Part shown: piece by piece, positions 20,907 to 49,693 of the stretch
How the letters are laid out: each line of letters begins with the position of its first letter
Numbering within the stretch: the stretch's first letter is position 1
NCBI GenBank assembly: GCA_038496445.1
Contig: JALMLS010000052.1
Span: 1-64,000 of the forward strand
DNA length: 64,000 bases
From: Trichosphaerium sp. ATCC 40318
Taxonomy: Eukaryota; Protista; Tubulinea
Direction of reading: 5' to 3'
Notes under the pieces: generated by a model
Databases searched by the model: none
What the model was told of the DNA's origin: nothing
What the model saw: the letters and a program-made list of their open reading frames with translations, nothing else
Position numbers and translations under genes: made by a program

Positions 20907-21349
<443 letters not shown>

Positions 21350-21906: not shown

Positions 21907-24090
21907 TTAGTATCTTTCTTTTAATTCAAAGATTAAAGCTGTAACTACAAAATCATTCTCGCATGAATTATCGATAAATGCATTACTGTTTAGAAACACA
22001 TAGTCGCCCATTAAAAACCTTTTTTTTACAAAGCAGAACTCGTTGTTAACATCAAATACTCTCCTTGGCATTCGTGTTTTTCTTGTCTTTCTACTTTCCA
22101 AAAATTCCTCTCTCTTTCGCTTACGCATCAAACGCTTGTCAACACCTAATTTCTTTTCTTAGTTCACGTATCACGTGCTACAAAAAGATTTTTACGTACT
22201 TTGTGTAGGGCACGTCAATAGCAGTGCAGGGTTAGGTACTGTAGGTGTAGTCTGCATAGGGCGACGAATGGGTGGAGGTGAGTTGCTTTGCAAAGTTAGA
22301 TTTTATTTTATAGTACTAAAGGTACGCACTCTGGACTAACTGGTGAGTATCGTGGTGATGTTGGTGAATATGTCGGTGACACTGGTGAGTATCGTGGTGA
22401 TGTTGGCGTGTATGACGGTGATGTTGGTGAGTACGATGGCGATGTTGGTGAGTATCGTGGTGATGATGGGGAGTATCCTGGCGATGTTGGCGAGTATGAA
22501 GGCGAGAATTTTGATGTCGGTACACTTTGCGGAGGAGAAGATGTGCGTAGTTGATGTGCTGAGTAAGAAGGGGATGTTGGTGAGTACGATGGCGATGTTG
22601 GTGAGTATCGTGGAGGATTTTGTGAAAACTTTATCCTGTTATTGAAGGTACTAAAGAATCCTTGGCCGCCCCTAAATGAAACAAAAAAAAGTCAGTCTTT
22701 TTCAATGGTTTTTTTTAGTTTTTTCGACGTACGGGTAATAAAAACAAGCAGGCATATAATGAGGTATCGAAGATGATGTATTATAAGCTTCTACTGCTTT
22801 TGCATGCGGAGATGAGTGATACGTTGTTCGTACTATCGTTTTAAAATGTTTTGCCAAATCAGAATTCATTATGCAATCTGCCTTGTGCGTTACTTTCTTC
22901 AAATAAGCTGTTTTTAATACTGGCTTAAGTATATAGTAAATCAATGCATCTACTCCTGTCAAGGTATTTTCCAGATCTTTAAAGTTTGAGTATGGGTGGT
23001 ATGTGCAGTAAGCAACTTTTGTTATTCTGTTTTTTGGAAAAATTTCAAAAGACTCAAGCACTTCTTGTTTATACTTTGTCACTAGTGATTGACGTATACG
23101 TGATTTATCTGATTTAACGCCAAATGCAAGTACGTATTTAGTACCACCAGGCGCTATGTGTGACACTAAACGAAAATAAGTACTTAAAGCACCAAAAGAC
23201 TGTTCGTCAGACTTTTTCTCGTTCGAAAAGGAAAAAAAAATGTAGGTCGTAAAAGTTAAGCACCTGTATGGCTGATGTTTGTTGGTTTCATCCACAAGTT
23301 TACTTTAATTTTGTCAGAAGTTATATAAATTGGGTTGTAATGAATTTCTGCTTTGCATCCTTGAATCTGAACATTTCCACCTGAACAATAAAAAATTATT
23401 TATTTCAGATGGTTTTATTTTGTCGCTACAAAGCACACTATACCTTTGTACTCTGATGGTAAATCTAAGTATATTACTCTATCATATGCTTCCATCATCT
23501 CTTTATCAAGTTCCACATGGTTTCGTACACTTGATTCATAAGATATTAGTGCAAAAGGCTCAACGTCCACGTGATAAAGCGCGAAAACATCATCTAACAT
23601 TTCTTCGGTTGCTTTTTGGAACTTTTCAGCAAATACTGGTCCCATTACTATATGGTCACGACCCAATCTACCCTTCATGTTCTCATACAACTCGTTTGTA
23701 TTATTTTGAAGGTACATCGGTGCACCACAAACATTCAAAGGTACTTCACTCAAAGGCAACTCAATGTCGAATGACTCAAAGGAATAAATATTGAGTTCGC
23801 TCAGGATCCATGGAGTAAAGTCTTTCCAAACTGCTGCGGAAACATAAGGTCTGCTCACACTAACGCCTTTCTACAAGGATGGAAAACATTAAATTGGGTA
23901 GTGTTGTAGAAAAGAAAATCATAAATAAAAGGAAGGCAAGACATACAGTGTACAACTTCGTTGCGCTTGCATAATCACTTAACACGGTATTTGTTAAGCG
24001 AACTGCCAAAAGATCTGTGAGACACAATTCGTCGAATACAGCAACACATATTTCTGGCGGTAAGGTATCAAGTAGCTTTGTTACCGACAT
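21907..24090 (-). CDS. F-box protein with RNA polymerase II CTD-like heptad repeats and a basic NLS-like patch (about 7 exons)
   Basis: N-terminal [29 protein letters not shown] (F-box); phase-consistent GT-AG joins link ORFs 23860-24090, 23415-23858, 22702-23295, the heptad exon (about 22330-22671) and the last exon [10 protein letters not shown]...KERY*. Confidence 0.78.
22332..22607 (-). repeat. 21-nt tandem repeat encoding 10 Pol II CTD-type heptads (2 + 8)
   Basis: [14 protein letters not shown] [spacer] [55 protein letters not shown]; synonymous third-position variation preserves this frame. Confidence 0.93.
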
Positions 24091-46734: not shown

Positions 46735-48382
46735 TCATCTTTTTTTTTTCTTAATTACTTTATTAAACATTCTGACTATCTTCGATTTATTTTTTATCTC
46801 CCTGTACAACATATGAGAAAAACAGGTTATTATATTGTATAAAATAATTATCATGTGCGAAGGTTGTGTACCTGAGTTGTGGAGGCTGTTGTAGCGCAAT
46901 ACATTGACATTCTCGAACAATTAGTGAAAACAGATTTTGAATATTCTTCCCTGTTTTACAACTCACACTTATGAATGGTATGTCCCATGATTTTGCATAA
47001 GATGCACCTTCTTCATTAGATACTTCTCTTTGTTCTTCAAGATCAATTTTATTGGCAACCTAATCCACAATATTATGAACAACAAAAGTAAGAAAAAAAA
47101 AAGAAATCATACCAAAATCATTGGTGTTGTAGGTTTATCTTTGATGCGTAGTACATGTTCTATGACCAGTGGTATTTCGTCAAAACTGGATTTACTTGAT
47201 ATACTGTATACGAAAACACATATTTCAGTATGGCGCATATAACCATCGCGTAATGCACGATACCTAGAATCAAAGTTACAAAAAAGTTATACAAAAGAAA
47301 GAAAAAACATAAGCGTCTTTGTACTCTTCTTGGCCAGCAGTATCTAGCAAATCCAAATGACTATAAAAATTGCCTCTTTTTAGGCATATACTAATTGCGT
47401 CCTCTAATTACTTTGTGAGCATTCAAGAGGATGTAAATACATAATTCTTCACGTTGTTATTCCCGCCCTTACAAGTACTGTTTTATACGAAATAAAATTC
47501 AAGGTGTTTCTGTGGGGTAAAAAAATAGAGAATTTGAACTGATATTTGATTGATTGATTCCGTATAATACGCAAACGTACCAATAGTTGGATCATATTCA
47601 TCCATGAACCAGTCAGTTATATATTTTACAATTATTGTAGTCTATTCCGCAGGCATATAAGAACACATGCTCGAAAAAAAAACAGAAAAAAAACAGAAAC
47701 ACTAACCACTCCCACGCCGCCTCCTCCAAAAAAGCAGCATTTAGTCTATGAAAAAAAATGTAGTTAGCCACGTGTTTTTTACATATGAAACCAGAGTTTA
47801 CAAAAAGAATTCTACGTACAGTTGGTGCGTTGTCCATCTTTTCGACTTGTGATTTGGAAAGTGATAACTTTGGTATCCTCTTTTTGACGTTTTCTCCGTA
47901 AGAACACCTTGAAATATGGTTTAGATGTATGCTATATCATTCCAACACTTAGACGCAAGTACCCTCTAACTTTGAGAAGAACTGCCTGTGAACAAGCTGT
48001 GAGTTAAGGCGCTTGTTTCGCCGATTCAAAGAAACAAGAAATAAAAAGCTCATAACACTTATTTTACTTTATCGTTGATGGCTATAGTTTTTGTAGTACC
48101 TTGTGCTCCCATTGATAGATAAAATCCTTCATAATGTTATCATCTTGGCCAATTTAATTGTAAATAGCGTTGAACGGTATAAGATGTACCTTTAGGGTCT
48201 GTCATGAAGTGGTAGGCGTAAAGCCGTCGCCATATGATGTTATCAGATGTAAATACCCTAAAAGCCTTCGAAGTAGCGCCAAGAGCTACTATATGTTCCA
48301 ATTCAAGGGTATTACTGATTAACACGAGGATCTCATGAGGAAGCGATACAAAAGCTGATAAACCGGATTCTTTCTTCTCCAT
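46735..48382 (-). CDS. F-box-Ras family GTPase fusion with degenerate P-loop (GGGGVGVT), no CAAX
   Basis: F-box SLPHEILVLISNTL..LGATSKAF..IWRRLY; after splicing: KCCFFGGGGVGVTTIIV, FMDEYDPTIED, LDLLDTAGQEEY, VANKIDL, VSCKTG, polybasic tail KVIKKKKR*. Ras spacing is collinear with canonical Ras. Confidence 0.88.
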
Positions 48383-48798: not shown

Positions 48799-49693
48799 TT
48801 AATAAAACCCAATATTTATCCTACCATCAAATGGCGGTGTTATCTTTAAATGCCTTGGTGTGCTACTCTTAGGCATAATCTTTGTAACAGCATGAAAGAT
48901 CATACGACTAGGACCTCCAAAAATCAATACATCACCAGAACTTAGTGTAACTTGTTTCTCATCATCTTCACGTTTATCCTTATATTTGAATACACAAGAA
49001 GATCCAAGACTGAAAGAAATAATAGGTGACTTAACTGTTTTTTGTTGTTCCTTAGTCAACCCATCTCTATCGCAATGCCATCCTATCTTGCCCTTTCTGG
49101 TATAATAATTTATCCTGCACACTTTAGCTTCTGATGCTGGTATAGAAGGGCATGCTTTACGAGCAATATTCAAGTATTTTGTATTCGCTTCTGAAAACTC
49201 TTTTGGTACGTCATTCATTGGTATAGACATACGCGCTTTGGTCTTTAAGTTCAATTGCTTGTTTTTCCTTGGTCTTGTGGACTGAGACTGAGGAGCAGCT
49301 GAGGTGTTTGGTTTTTTCACAGAGTATGTGTTTGCGCTAAGATCCGTGTCTGCAAAACCTGTAGCGAGTTAGAAATATCCATTGAAGCGTATTTTGATGT
49401 GTTTTACGTACCTTCCGCTGTCATAATGAACTTGCCGGTGTAAAAAGAGCCGTAAGCTGGGTGTTTACCCTGTCCATACGCTACGCTTATGTTCATAAGC
49501 TTTTGTTGCTCTTGAGGGCTTACAATATTTTTTAATAATACCAAACCATCCTAATTATACCCTCATTAGCGTAACAAGTACTAAGAGGGTATGTAATATC
49601 GAGAATACGTACTTGTAAGACAATTGTCTCCGGTTCAACGTGAGTGGTACGTTTAGCCTTTGGAACGTATGCGAAACCTGTGTTTGAGCTCAT
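48799..49693 (-). CDS. AlkB-family 2OG-Fe(II) dioxygenase (AlkB/ALKBH1-like)
   Basis: DGLVLLKNIVSPQEQ, INYY, IGWHCD (HxD), IISFSLG, GDVLIFGGPSRMIFHAV, RINIGF; 2 introns. Confidence 0.9.

Follow-up and report, generated by a model that had tools for sequence, protein, structure and literature searches.

How does an array of heptads like those of RNA polymerase II's carboxy-terminal domain (CTD) come to be carried by a protein that is not a polymerase subunit, and what might it do there? Heptad arrays of the CTD type are looked upon as characteristic of a single protein, Rpb1. The question is raised by a locus of the amoeba Trichosphaerium sp. ATCC 40318, which lies within positions 1 to 64,000 of contig JALMLS010000052.1 (assembly GCA_038496445.1); we analysed this whole stretch of 64,000 nucleotides and refer to it as the window. 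On its minus strand, from 24090 to 21907, one mRNA encodes an F-box-like motif, a body made up of about 340 residues of orphan sequence, ten CTD-type heptads arranged as two plus eight, a basic stretch resembling a nuclear localisation signal (NLS), and a C-terminal tail. We conclude that the gene is real, expressed and lineage-restricted.

The minus-strand frame between 22607 and 22330 reads as two heptads, a degenerate spacer of 23 residues, and eight further heptads that remain in register. A sequence-only reading of the locus had described ten YSPTSPS-type heptads, four of them perfect, with Y1, P3, S5 and P6 invariant and variation at positions 7 and 4, and reading the frame anew gave the same result. 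The first two heptads are among the four that match the consensus perfectly. Position 2 is Ser in nine of the ten heptads and Thr in the other, whereas position 4 is Thr in seven, Val in two and Ser in one. Position 7 is the most variable, being occupied by Ser four times, by Arg three times, and once each by Gly, Thr and Asp. In order to determine whether the array is recognized by a curated model of the CTD repeat, we searched the protein against Pfam. The RNA_pol_Rpb1_R model (PF05001) reports eight stretches with a score of 52.9 bits, far above its cutoff of 20.3. A six-frame scan of the 64 kb for Y[ST]PxSP found the array to be the only site of this kind in the window.

The array is nevertheless not accompanied by any other part of a polymerase. 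The catalytic domains of Rpb1 (RNA_pol_Rpb1_1 to _7) had no Pfam match in the protein at E values up to 10 and the NADFDGD motif is absent, in agreement with the earlier statement that no RPB1 catalytic motifs could be seen. Thus the protein is not an Rpb1 and has only a CTD-like array in common with it. The resemblance to the Rpb1 CTD lies in the tandem, in-register YSPTSPS heptads, four of which are perfect, and in changes that are concentrated, as they are in distal CTDs, on position 7 and on position 4. The differences are that there are only ten heptads, that these are split into two and eight by the degenerate spacer, and that the array is internal, being followed by about 95 residues and carried by an F-box protein that lacks the Rpb1 domains. 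The protein contains 26 [ST]-P sites, nearly all of them within residues 397-501. A PPxY motif, PPRY, encoded at 22608-22619 (residues 393-396), abuts the first heptad, and its Tyr is the Y1 of that heptad. PPxY is the type of ligand that is bound by the WW domains of Nedd4/Rsp5-family ligases.

All ten heptads are encoded by a single exon, exon 5 (22330-22671, 342 nt), which is in phase 2 at both ends. This exon comprises a lead-in of 22 residues ending in NPPR, heptads 1 and 2 (22607-22566), the spacer (22565-22497) and heptads 3 to 10 (22496-22330). It ends in GA|gtgcgt and the codon that completes the last heptad takes its final base from the first base of exon 6, so that this heptad ends in D. 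Being symmetric, exon 5 could be removed, inserted, relocated or skipped without loss of the reading frame, as one would expect of a cassette. At the level of DNA the array has a period of 21 with 7.5 copies and 75% matches, as reported by Tandem Repeats Finder. Because the 21-nt period is matched to no more than this extent, the array is not a fresh product of slippage. From one heptad to the next, S2, S5 and P6 are encoded by different synonymous codons, including one switch of a serine codon from TCN to AGT, while the residues themselves are fixed. Since the heptads diverge synonymously while Y1, P3, S5 and P6 stay constant, the peptide pattern looks selected, with the caveat that the numbers are small.

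In order to establish whether the heptads and the F-box-like motif belong to the same message, we compared our gene model with transcript data. The model consists of seven exons with GT-AG introns throughout and a product of 595 amino acids. It starts with the ATG at 24090, which is closely preceded on its 5' side by an in-frame TAA. The transcript data were contigs of two public sequencing runs from two studies, X1 (2015) and X2 (2023), and a JGI transcript contig, L001. X1 and the JGI sample possibly derive from the same raw data, therefore we count the independent studies as two and not three. In the X1 and X2 contigs each of the six introns is absent exactly where the model places it, the intron ends being CT..AC on the plus strand, equivalent to GT..AG on the minus strand. 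The joints seen in the run contigs include 23870/23947, 23380/23444, 22671/22733, 22285/22330 and 22145/22200, the last two of which are present in both runs as well as in L001.

The contigs assembled from the two runs break inside the repeat and none of them alone spans the gene. The JGI contig does so: aligned to the window with blastn, it forms seven blocks from 24104 to 21847, with junctions as modelled and 1863 nt of spliced sequence, beginning 14 nt upstream of exon 1. Its only long open reading frame (ORF), at 15-1802, encodes 595 amino acids, and an exhaustive protein search showed that the protein called from it by JGI (P0001, 595 amino acids) is identical to our own model. The earlier proposal that one mRNA runs across 24090-21907 is thus borne out by a single contig that covers all seven exons. 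At the level of assembled transcripts we found neither separate messages for the F-box and the heptads nor use of another frame, given that L001 is continuous and every joint is seen.

Two details of the earlier model were also examined. The junction upstream of the heptad exon, CC|gtacgt...tttag|G, is the one used in the transcripts. Downstream, an exon containing RKRKR does follow as had been stated, but it is not joined directly to the heptad exon, for an 86-nt exon (exon 6, 22285-22200) lies between them. The heptad frame is missing from the list of ORFs because it belongs to an internal exon; the two shadow frames that had been named in its place, a His-rich one at 22316-22525 on the minus strand and a Val/Met-rich one at 22343-22645 on the plus strand, are both present in that list.

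Skipping of exon 5 was not seen in the contigs of either run. One X2 contig (23841-23976) retains intron 1 (23871-23946) at a depth of 10, compared with about 32-40 for the spliced form, which is about a quarter. As read from its sequence, the retained form would meet a stop 28 codons past the F-box exon and would yield an F-box-only peptide. Separately, X1 contigs that overlap 22340-22417 have loose ends that run into other heptad-coding sequence (one, for example, reads ..SPTSPNYTPA.. on the minus strand) that does not belong to this gene. Because these ends read foreign heptad sequence, the transcriptome holds further heptad-coding mRNAs, which would be either the true RPB1 or other genes that bear arrays.

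Differences between sources provide another view of the gene. Compared with the window, X2 shows nine coding differences, six of them synonymous and three non-synonymous, and L001 shows two, both synonymous. Taking all sources together, there are seven distinct synonymous and three non-synonymous differences, and none of them lies in the heptad exon. The three non-synonymous changes (F573L, D575A and N576S) all fall within residues 573-576 of the tail. Five of the nine X2 differences are clustered within 12 nt of the tail-coding sequence, at 21968-21979, a pattern that looks like either a single complex event or a patch that varies within a gene conserved elsewhere.

We then consider the modules that flank the array. 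Exon 1 (23947-24090, 48 codons, phase 0) encodes, at residues 7-47, an F-box-like motif that includes LLAVRLTN. When the exon-1 peptide is searched separately, the F-box-like model PF12937 reports this motif with 26.9 bits (cutoff 24.3, E = 4e-6). The claim of an F-box thus holds against Pfam for the exon-1 peptide, whereas the full-length protein falls just under the cutoff, and we regard the assignment, which is made from sequence similarity, as marginal but credible. The motif contains L-P-P-E-I and V-F-x-x-L, the latter corresponding to the VFxxF positions of Dictyostelium JcdI, where mutation of VFxxF abolished binding to Skp1 (PMC9485057). On the other side of the array, exon 6 (22200-22285, 86 nt) encodes a Pro-rich linker, and exon 7 (21907-22145, including the TAA stop) encodes a basic stretch at about 22137-22060 followed by the tail of 45 residues. 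The basic stretch looks like a classical nuclear localisation signal and is taken here as a putative one. The tail has no meaningful match in Pfam, NCBIfam or PDB sequences, and an Atlas search with the last 91 residues gave no usable match.

Between the F-box-like motif and the array lie residues 49-390, for which the sequence-only reading had named no feature. The region probably holds a core resembling 2-oxoglutarate (2OG)-Fe(II) oxygenases. When residues 45-390 were used as the query of an Atlas search, PF13640 (2OG-FeII_Oxy_3) was the family of the highest-ranking clusters, which scored 0.77-0.78. Residues 125-255 score 0.81-0.84, and every named family that they match is 2OG-FeII_Oxy_3, Asp_Arg_Hydrox or OGFOD2-like, all of which are double-stranded beta-helix 2OG oxygenases. 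These scores are below the 0.9 mark of the tool and we therefore tested the assignment independently. A custom hidden Markov model (HMM) was built from 17 sequences, namely 16 annotated 2OG-Fe(II) oxygenases of cyanophages and pelagiphages together with YbiX of Escherichia coli. Residues 100-260 score 12.0 bits against this model, compared with at most 6.7 bits across 1000 shuffled versions. Of the 153 natural open stretches in the window, none exceeded 9.3 bits apart from a neighbouring AlkB-like ORF, which scored 20.7 bits and served as a positive control. A profile comparison with hhalign gave P = 6e-4 over 63 columns. A narrower HMM, made from YbiX sequences at least 80% identical, had given 2.7 bits and a rank of third among 501, and was superseded by the diverse profile of phage enzymes and YbiX.

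The residues that would bind metal and 2OG can be proposed from alignments. A MAFFT alignment with YbiX homologues, in which the protein is 22% identical to YbiX across some 160 residues, places Y-H-V-D on YbiX with LFLSDPQSYDGG in the matched segment, aligns the GG, and puts H228 on the distal His. In the diverse alignment, K239 falls on the 2OG-binding Arg of the family, and H166-V-E168 has the family spacing to the GG turn. Taken together, these admittedly weak alignments contain the HxD/E...H pattern and a basic residue in the order and spacing of the family, as H148-V-D150 or H166-V-E168, G191-G192, H228 and K239. The candidates for metal and 2OG binding are accordingly H166-x-E168 or H148-x-D150, H228 and K239. 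The putative core, of the type represented by PKHD and prolyl hydroxylases, covers approximately residues 140-245 (23119-23597) and has two introns inside it, beginning in the last part of exon 2, covering exon 3 and reaching into the first part of exon 4. Exon 2 (23444-23870) encodes the first section of the orphan body, with H148-V-D150 (23573-23565), H166-V-E168 and a YLDLPSEYK(GG) motif. Exon 3 (23264-23380) encodes what would be the beta-rich centre of a double-stranded beta-helix and has the candidate distal His, H228, at its end. Exon 4 (22733-23165) opens with ..APGGTK(239)YVLAF, which contains the candidate 2OG-binding basic residue, and continues with about 130 residues of probably helical orphan sequence. 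YbiX/PiuC and other PF13640 enzymes share with this protein the HVD, a YL..P..Y.GG motif, a ..H.V.. segment with the distal His and, some 10-11 positions later, a basic residue, all in the same order. They differ from it in that the protein is below every curated threshold, has extra insertions and unrelated flanks, and has a fold that is putative. On balance, we consider it probable that the body contains a divergent 2OG-Fe(II) oxygenase-like core of the PKHD/prolyl-hydroxylase type.

In order to find relatives of the body, we searched a number of protein and genome collections. An exhaustive HMMER search with exon 4 (residues 231-373) against 1.84 billion representatives retrieved only the protein itself, the oxygenase-like core lying outside this query. 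A word-indexed search of 5.8 billion proteins with residues 1-390 and with residues 100-260 likewise returned only the self-match. No relative of residues 45-395 was found in JGI metagenome and viral contigs, no match to exon 4 in bacterial and archaeal genome contigs, and no relative of the body in phage genomes searched with tblastn; in the window, tblastn with the body, the tail and the N-terminus found no paralogue. The best PDB rows for the body and tail, centrin and SpoIIIAH, were at the level of chance and were rejected. Among PHROGs, a family of unknown function (phrog_5124) matched residues 161-226 (about 23534-23270) weakly, with an E value of 0.026, and this is the same stretch that carries the oxygenase-like motifs. 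The body of about 340 residues (49-390) thus appears to be an orphan within the databases searched.

What kind of protein is known to have such a layout? Because residues 49-390 probably hold a 2OG-Fe(II) oxygenase-like core, the nearest analogy is to the F-box dioxygenases. In animals, KDM2A and KDM2B (FBXL11 and FBXL10) combine a 2OG-Fe(II) oxygenase with an F-box in one polypeptide, are nuclear, and act on the transcription and chromatin machinery. They resemble the amoeba protein in having the two domains together (the oxygenase being putative here), but the order is reversed, with JmjC at the N-terminus and the F-box at the C-terminus, and they carry CXXC, PHD and leucine-rich repeat regions and no CTD-type repeats. 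A closer parallel in layout is offered by JcdI/Fbxo13 of Dictyostelium, in which an N-terminal F-box precedes a non-haem dioxygenase and which interacts directly with Skp1 and depends on Skp1 to be soluble; its F-box is not needed for the phenotype and appears to set the level of the enzyme itself (PMC9485057). JcdI/Fbxo13 and JcdH are F-box plus JmjC dioxygenases found across protists, and heptads in JcdI are not described in that work (PMC9485057). Our protein is like these two in that an N-terminal F-box-like motif precedes a non-haem 2OG dioxygenase-type domain, putative in this case, in an amoeba. It is unlike them in that their catalytic domain is a JmjC domain related to JmjD6, whereas the similarity seen here is weak and of the PKHD/prolyl-hydroxylase type; neither JmjC nor Cupin_8 has a Pfam match in this protein. 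Judged by its predicted domains, the protein would be an analogue in layout of the JcdI-type F-box dioxygenases and not a member of that group.

CTD-like peptides outside the polymerase have been described in yeast, where CTD-mimicking motifs of Trf4 and Sen1, the Nrd1-interacting motifs (NIM), bind the CTD-interacting domain (CID) of Nrd1 (PMC4186968, PMC7110113). As in our protein, a CTD-like peptide is borne by a non-polymerase protein, and in theirs it engages a CTD reader. The difference is that each NIM is one short motif mimicking a phosphorylated heptad, with no arrays of consensus heptads and no F-box. Such single short motifs, in Trf4 and Sen1, were the only CTD mimics outside the polymerase that our search of the full-text literature found; neither an F-box protein with CTD heptads nor a PF05001 array on a non-polymerase protein was described in what it returned. 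Both the combination of F-box and dioxygenase and the use of the F-box as a promiscuous N-terminal module are already known. What is new is the addition of a CTD-type array to the layout of an F-box protein with a probable dioxygenase domain.

These comparisons lead to the explanation that we tentatively favour, namely that this is a modular F-box/oxygenase-like protein of nuclear type in which the heptad array serves as a portable module for address and regulation. The protein would be of the F-box dioxygenase type and would have acquired a CTD-type array and an NLS. The F-box-like motif could dock on Skp1. In the nucleus, the Ser-Pro sites of the array may be phosphorylated, and the kinases, isomerases and CTD readers of the polymerase tail may bind the array as well. 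The array could thereby place an enzyme bound to Skp1 or to the Skp1-cullin-F-box (SCF) ligase alongside the transcription machinery, or subject it to those kinases. CTD-interacting domains, the capping enzyme, Ess1/Pin1 and CTD kinases contact one to three heptads. Because eight tandem consensus-like heptads exceed the one to three that are contacted, it is the simplest inference that the same factors would read this array. Capture of CTD readers for ubiquitylation would be one possible consequence among several.

A number of observations weigh against this explanation. In the full-length protein PF12937 reaches 21.9 bits (E = 1.5e-4), below the cutoff of 24.3. With the curated PF13640 model the protein gives no hit, searches of the body against Pfam, NCBIfam and PDB sequences at E values up to 10 gave no family match, the score with the custom HMM is modest, and either of two sites could be the first metal motif. 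Structure prediction with AlphaFold2 was unusable, the predicted local distance difference test (pLDDT) value being 29 for residues 1-395 from a single sequence and 34 for residues 49-300 from a shallow alignment of 25 YbiX homologues. As no homologue was detected in the searches described above, conservation would not lend support to any function. Finally, an Arg-rich position 7 and a length of ten heptads might prove insufficient in vivo for the kinases and readers of the CTD.

Other explanations of the same protein have to be weighed. It could be an SCF substrate receptor whose heptads are a decoy CTD that captures readers, writers and erasers (CID proteins, the capping enzyme, Pin1/Ess1, Fcp1/Ssu72 and CTD kinases) for ubiquitylation. 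An N-terminal F-box with heptads towards the C-terminus is the usual layout of a receptor, the array is canonical enough to be reported by the Pfam CTD model and is followed by the basic NLS-like stretch, and short CID-binding CTD mimics are known in yeast Trf4 and Sen1 (PMC4186968, PMC7110113). Such a receptor would leave the body, probably an enzyme domain, unexplained, and in JcdI, the one amoeba F-box dioxygenase that has been studied, the F-box was dispensable for the phenotype and seemed to control the level of the protein itself (PMC9485057). We hold the decoy to be distinctly unlikely in this strict form, and it is best treated as a special case of the address-module explanation. The heptads might instead be a regulatory or substrate region of the protein itself, acting without Pol II partners, either as a multi-site Ser-Pro phosphodegron or switch or as a Pro-rich substrate, in cis or in trans, of the adjacent prolyl-hydroxylase-like core. 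The crowding of [ST]-P sites into the array region and the PPxY directly before the first heptad are consistent with this, as is the family of the putative oxygenase, which consists largely of prolyl hydroxylases. A generic Ser-Pro degron, however, needs no exact YSPTSPS register with an invariant Y1, and the oxygenase assignment is itself only probable; a purely internal role of this kind seems to us improbable.

It is also conceivable that the array is a linker of low complexity in a young orphan gene, born by slippage or brought in by exon shuffling and tolerated since without acting through the CTD code, and that its likeness to the CTD is historical or incidental. The protein is a singleton among billions, and its array lies in one symmetric exon whose insertion would have kept the reading frame, both of which agree with such an origin. 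Yet the gene is expressed in two studies with all of its introns correctly spliced, the strain differences are mostly synonymous with none in the array, the heptads have diverged synonymously around the four invariant residues, and the imperfect match of the DNA repeat speaks against a recent expansion. An inert linker is therefore unlikely in our judgement, although it deserves to be kept in mind. An artefact, in which a chimeric model would unite F-box and heptad exons from different transcripts or the heptad frame would be untranslated, could draw on the break of the run contigs inside the repeat and on the X2 contig with intron 1 retained, which would truncate the protein after the F-box. 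Against this stand the single JGI contig with its one long ORF across seven exons, the presence of every joint in the run contigs, and the low-complexity nature of the alternative frames, which are shadow frames. The artefact is already largely refuted and we regard it as extremely improbable. We return, then, to a portable address and regulation module as the favoured role of the array.

The surroundings of the gene are as follows. The window is intron-rich, with a GC content of about 37%. A histone H3 gene at 20907-21349 lies on the same minus strand, about 500 nt downstream of the 3' end of the gene, and is present as two ORF pieces, therefore it probably contains an intron. The AlkB-like ORF that was used as a control is at 48799-49368 on the minus strand, just upstream of an F-box at 48343, and has the AlkB/ALKBH-like motifs RINYY..GWHCD, FGGPSR.IFHAV and GRINIGF.

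What the locus adds is an expressed cellular protein in which ten true heptads, four of them perfect, are fused to a predicted Skp1-docking motif and probably to an oxygenase core. A wider and rather doubtful extension is that the CTD heptad array has turned, within this lineage of amoebae, into a portable module copied onto unrelated regulators. Through it the CTD code, with its kinases, phosphatases, isomerases and readers, would direct a set of enzymes of the ubiquitin, SUMO and hydroxylation kinds to hubs of transcription, and the CTD code would be tied by this gene both to Skp1/SCF and to an enzyme that depends on oxygen. Should the array be inert, the locus illustrates the ease with which arrays of this type spread in the form of exon-sized cassettes. 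If it is read by the CTD machinery, the gene is a natural experiment on a free CTD array in vivo, with respect to targeting, competition and entry into condensates, and it would link the CTD code and SCF ubiquitylation with the oxygen-dependent Skp1 and F-box dioxygenase biology of amoebae.

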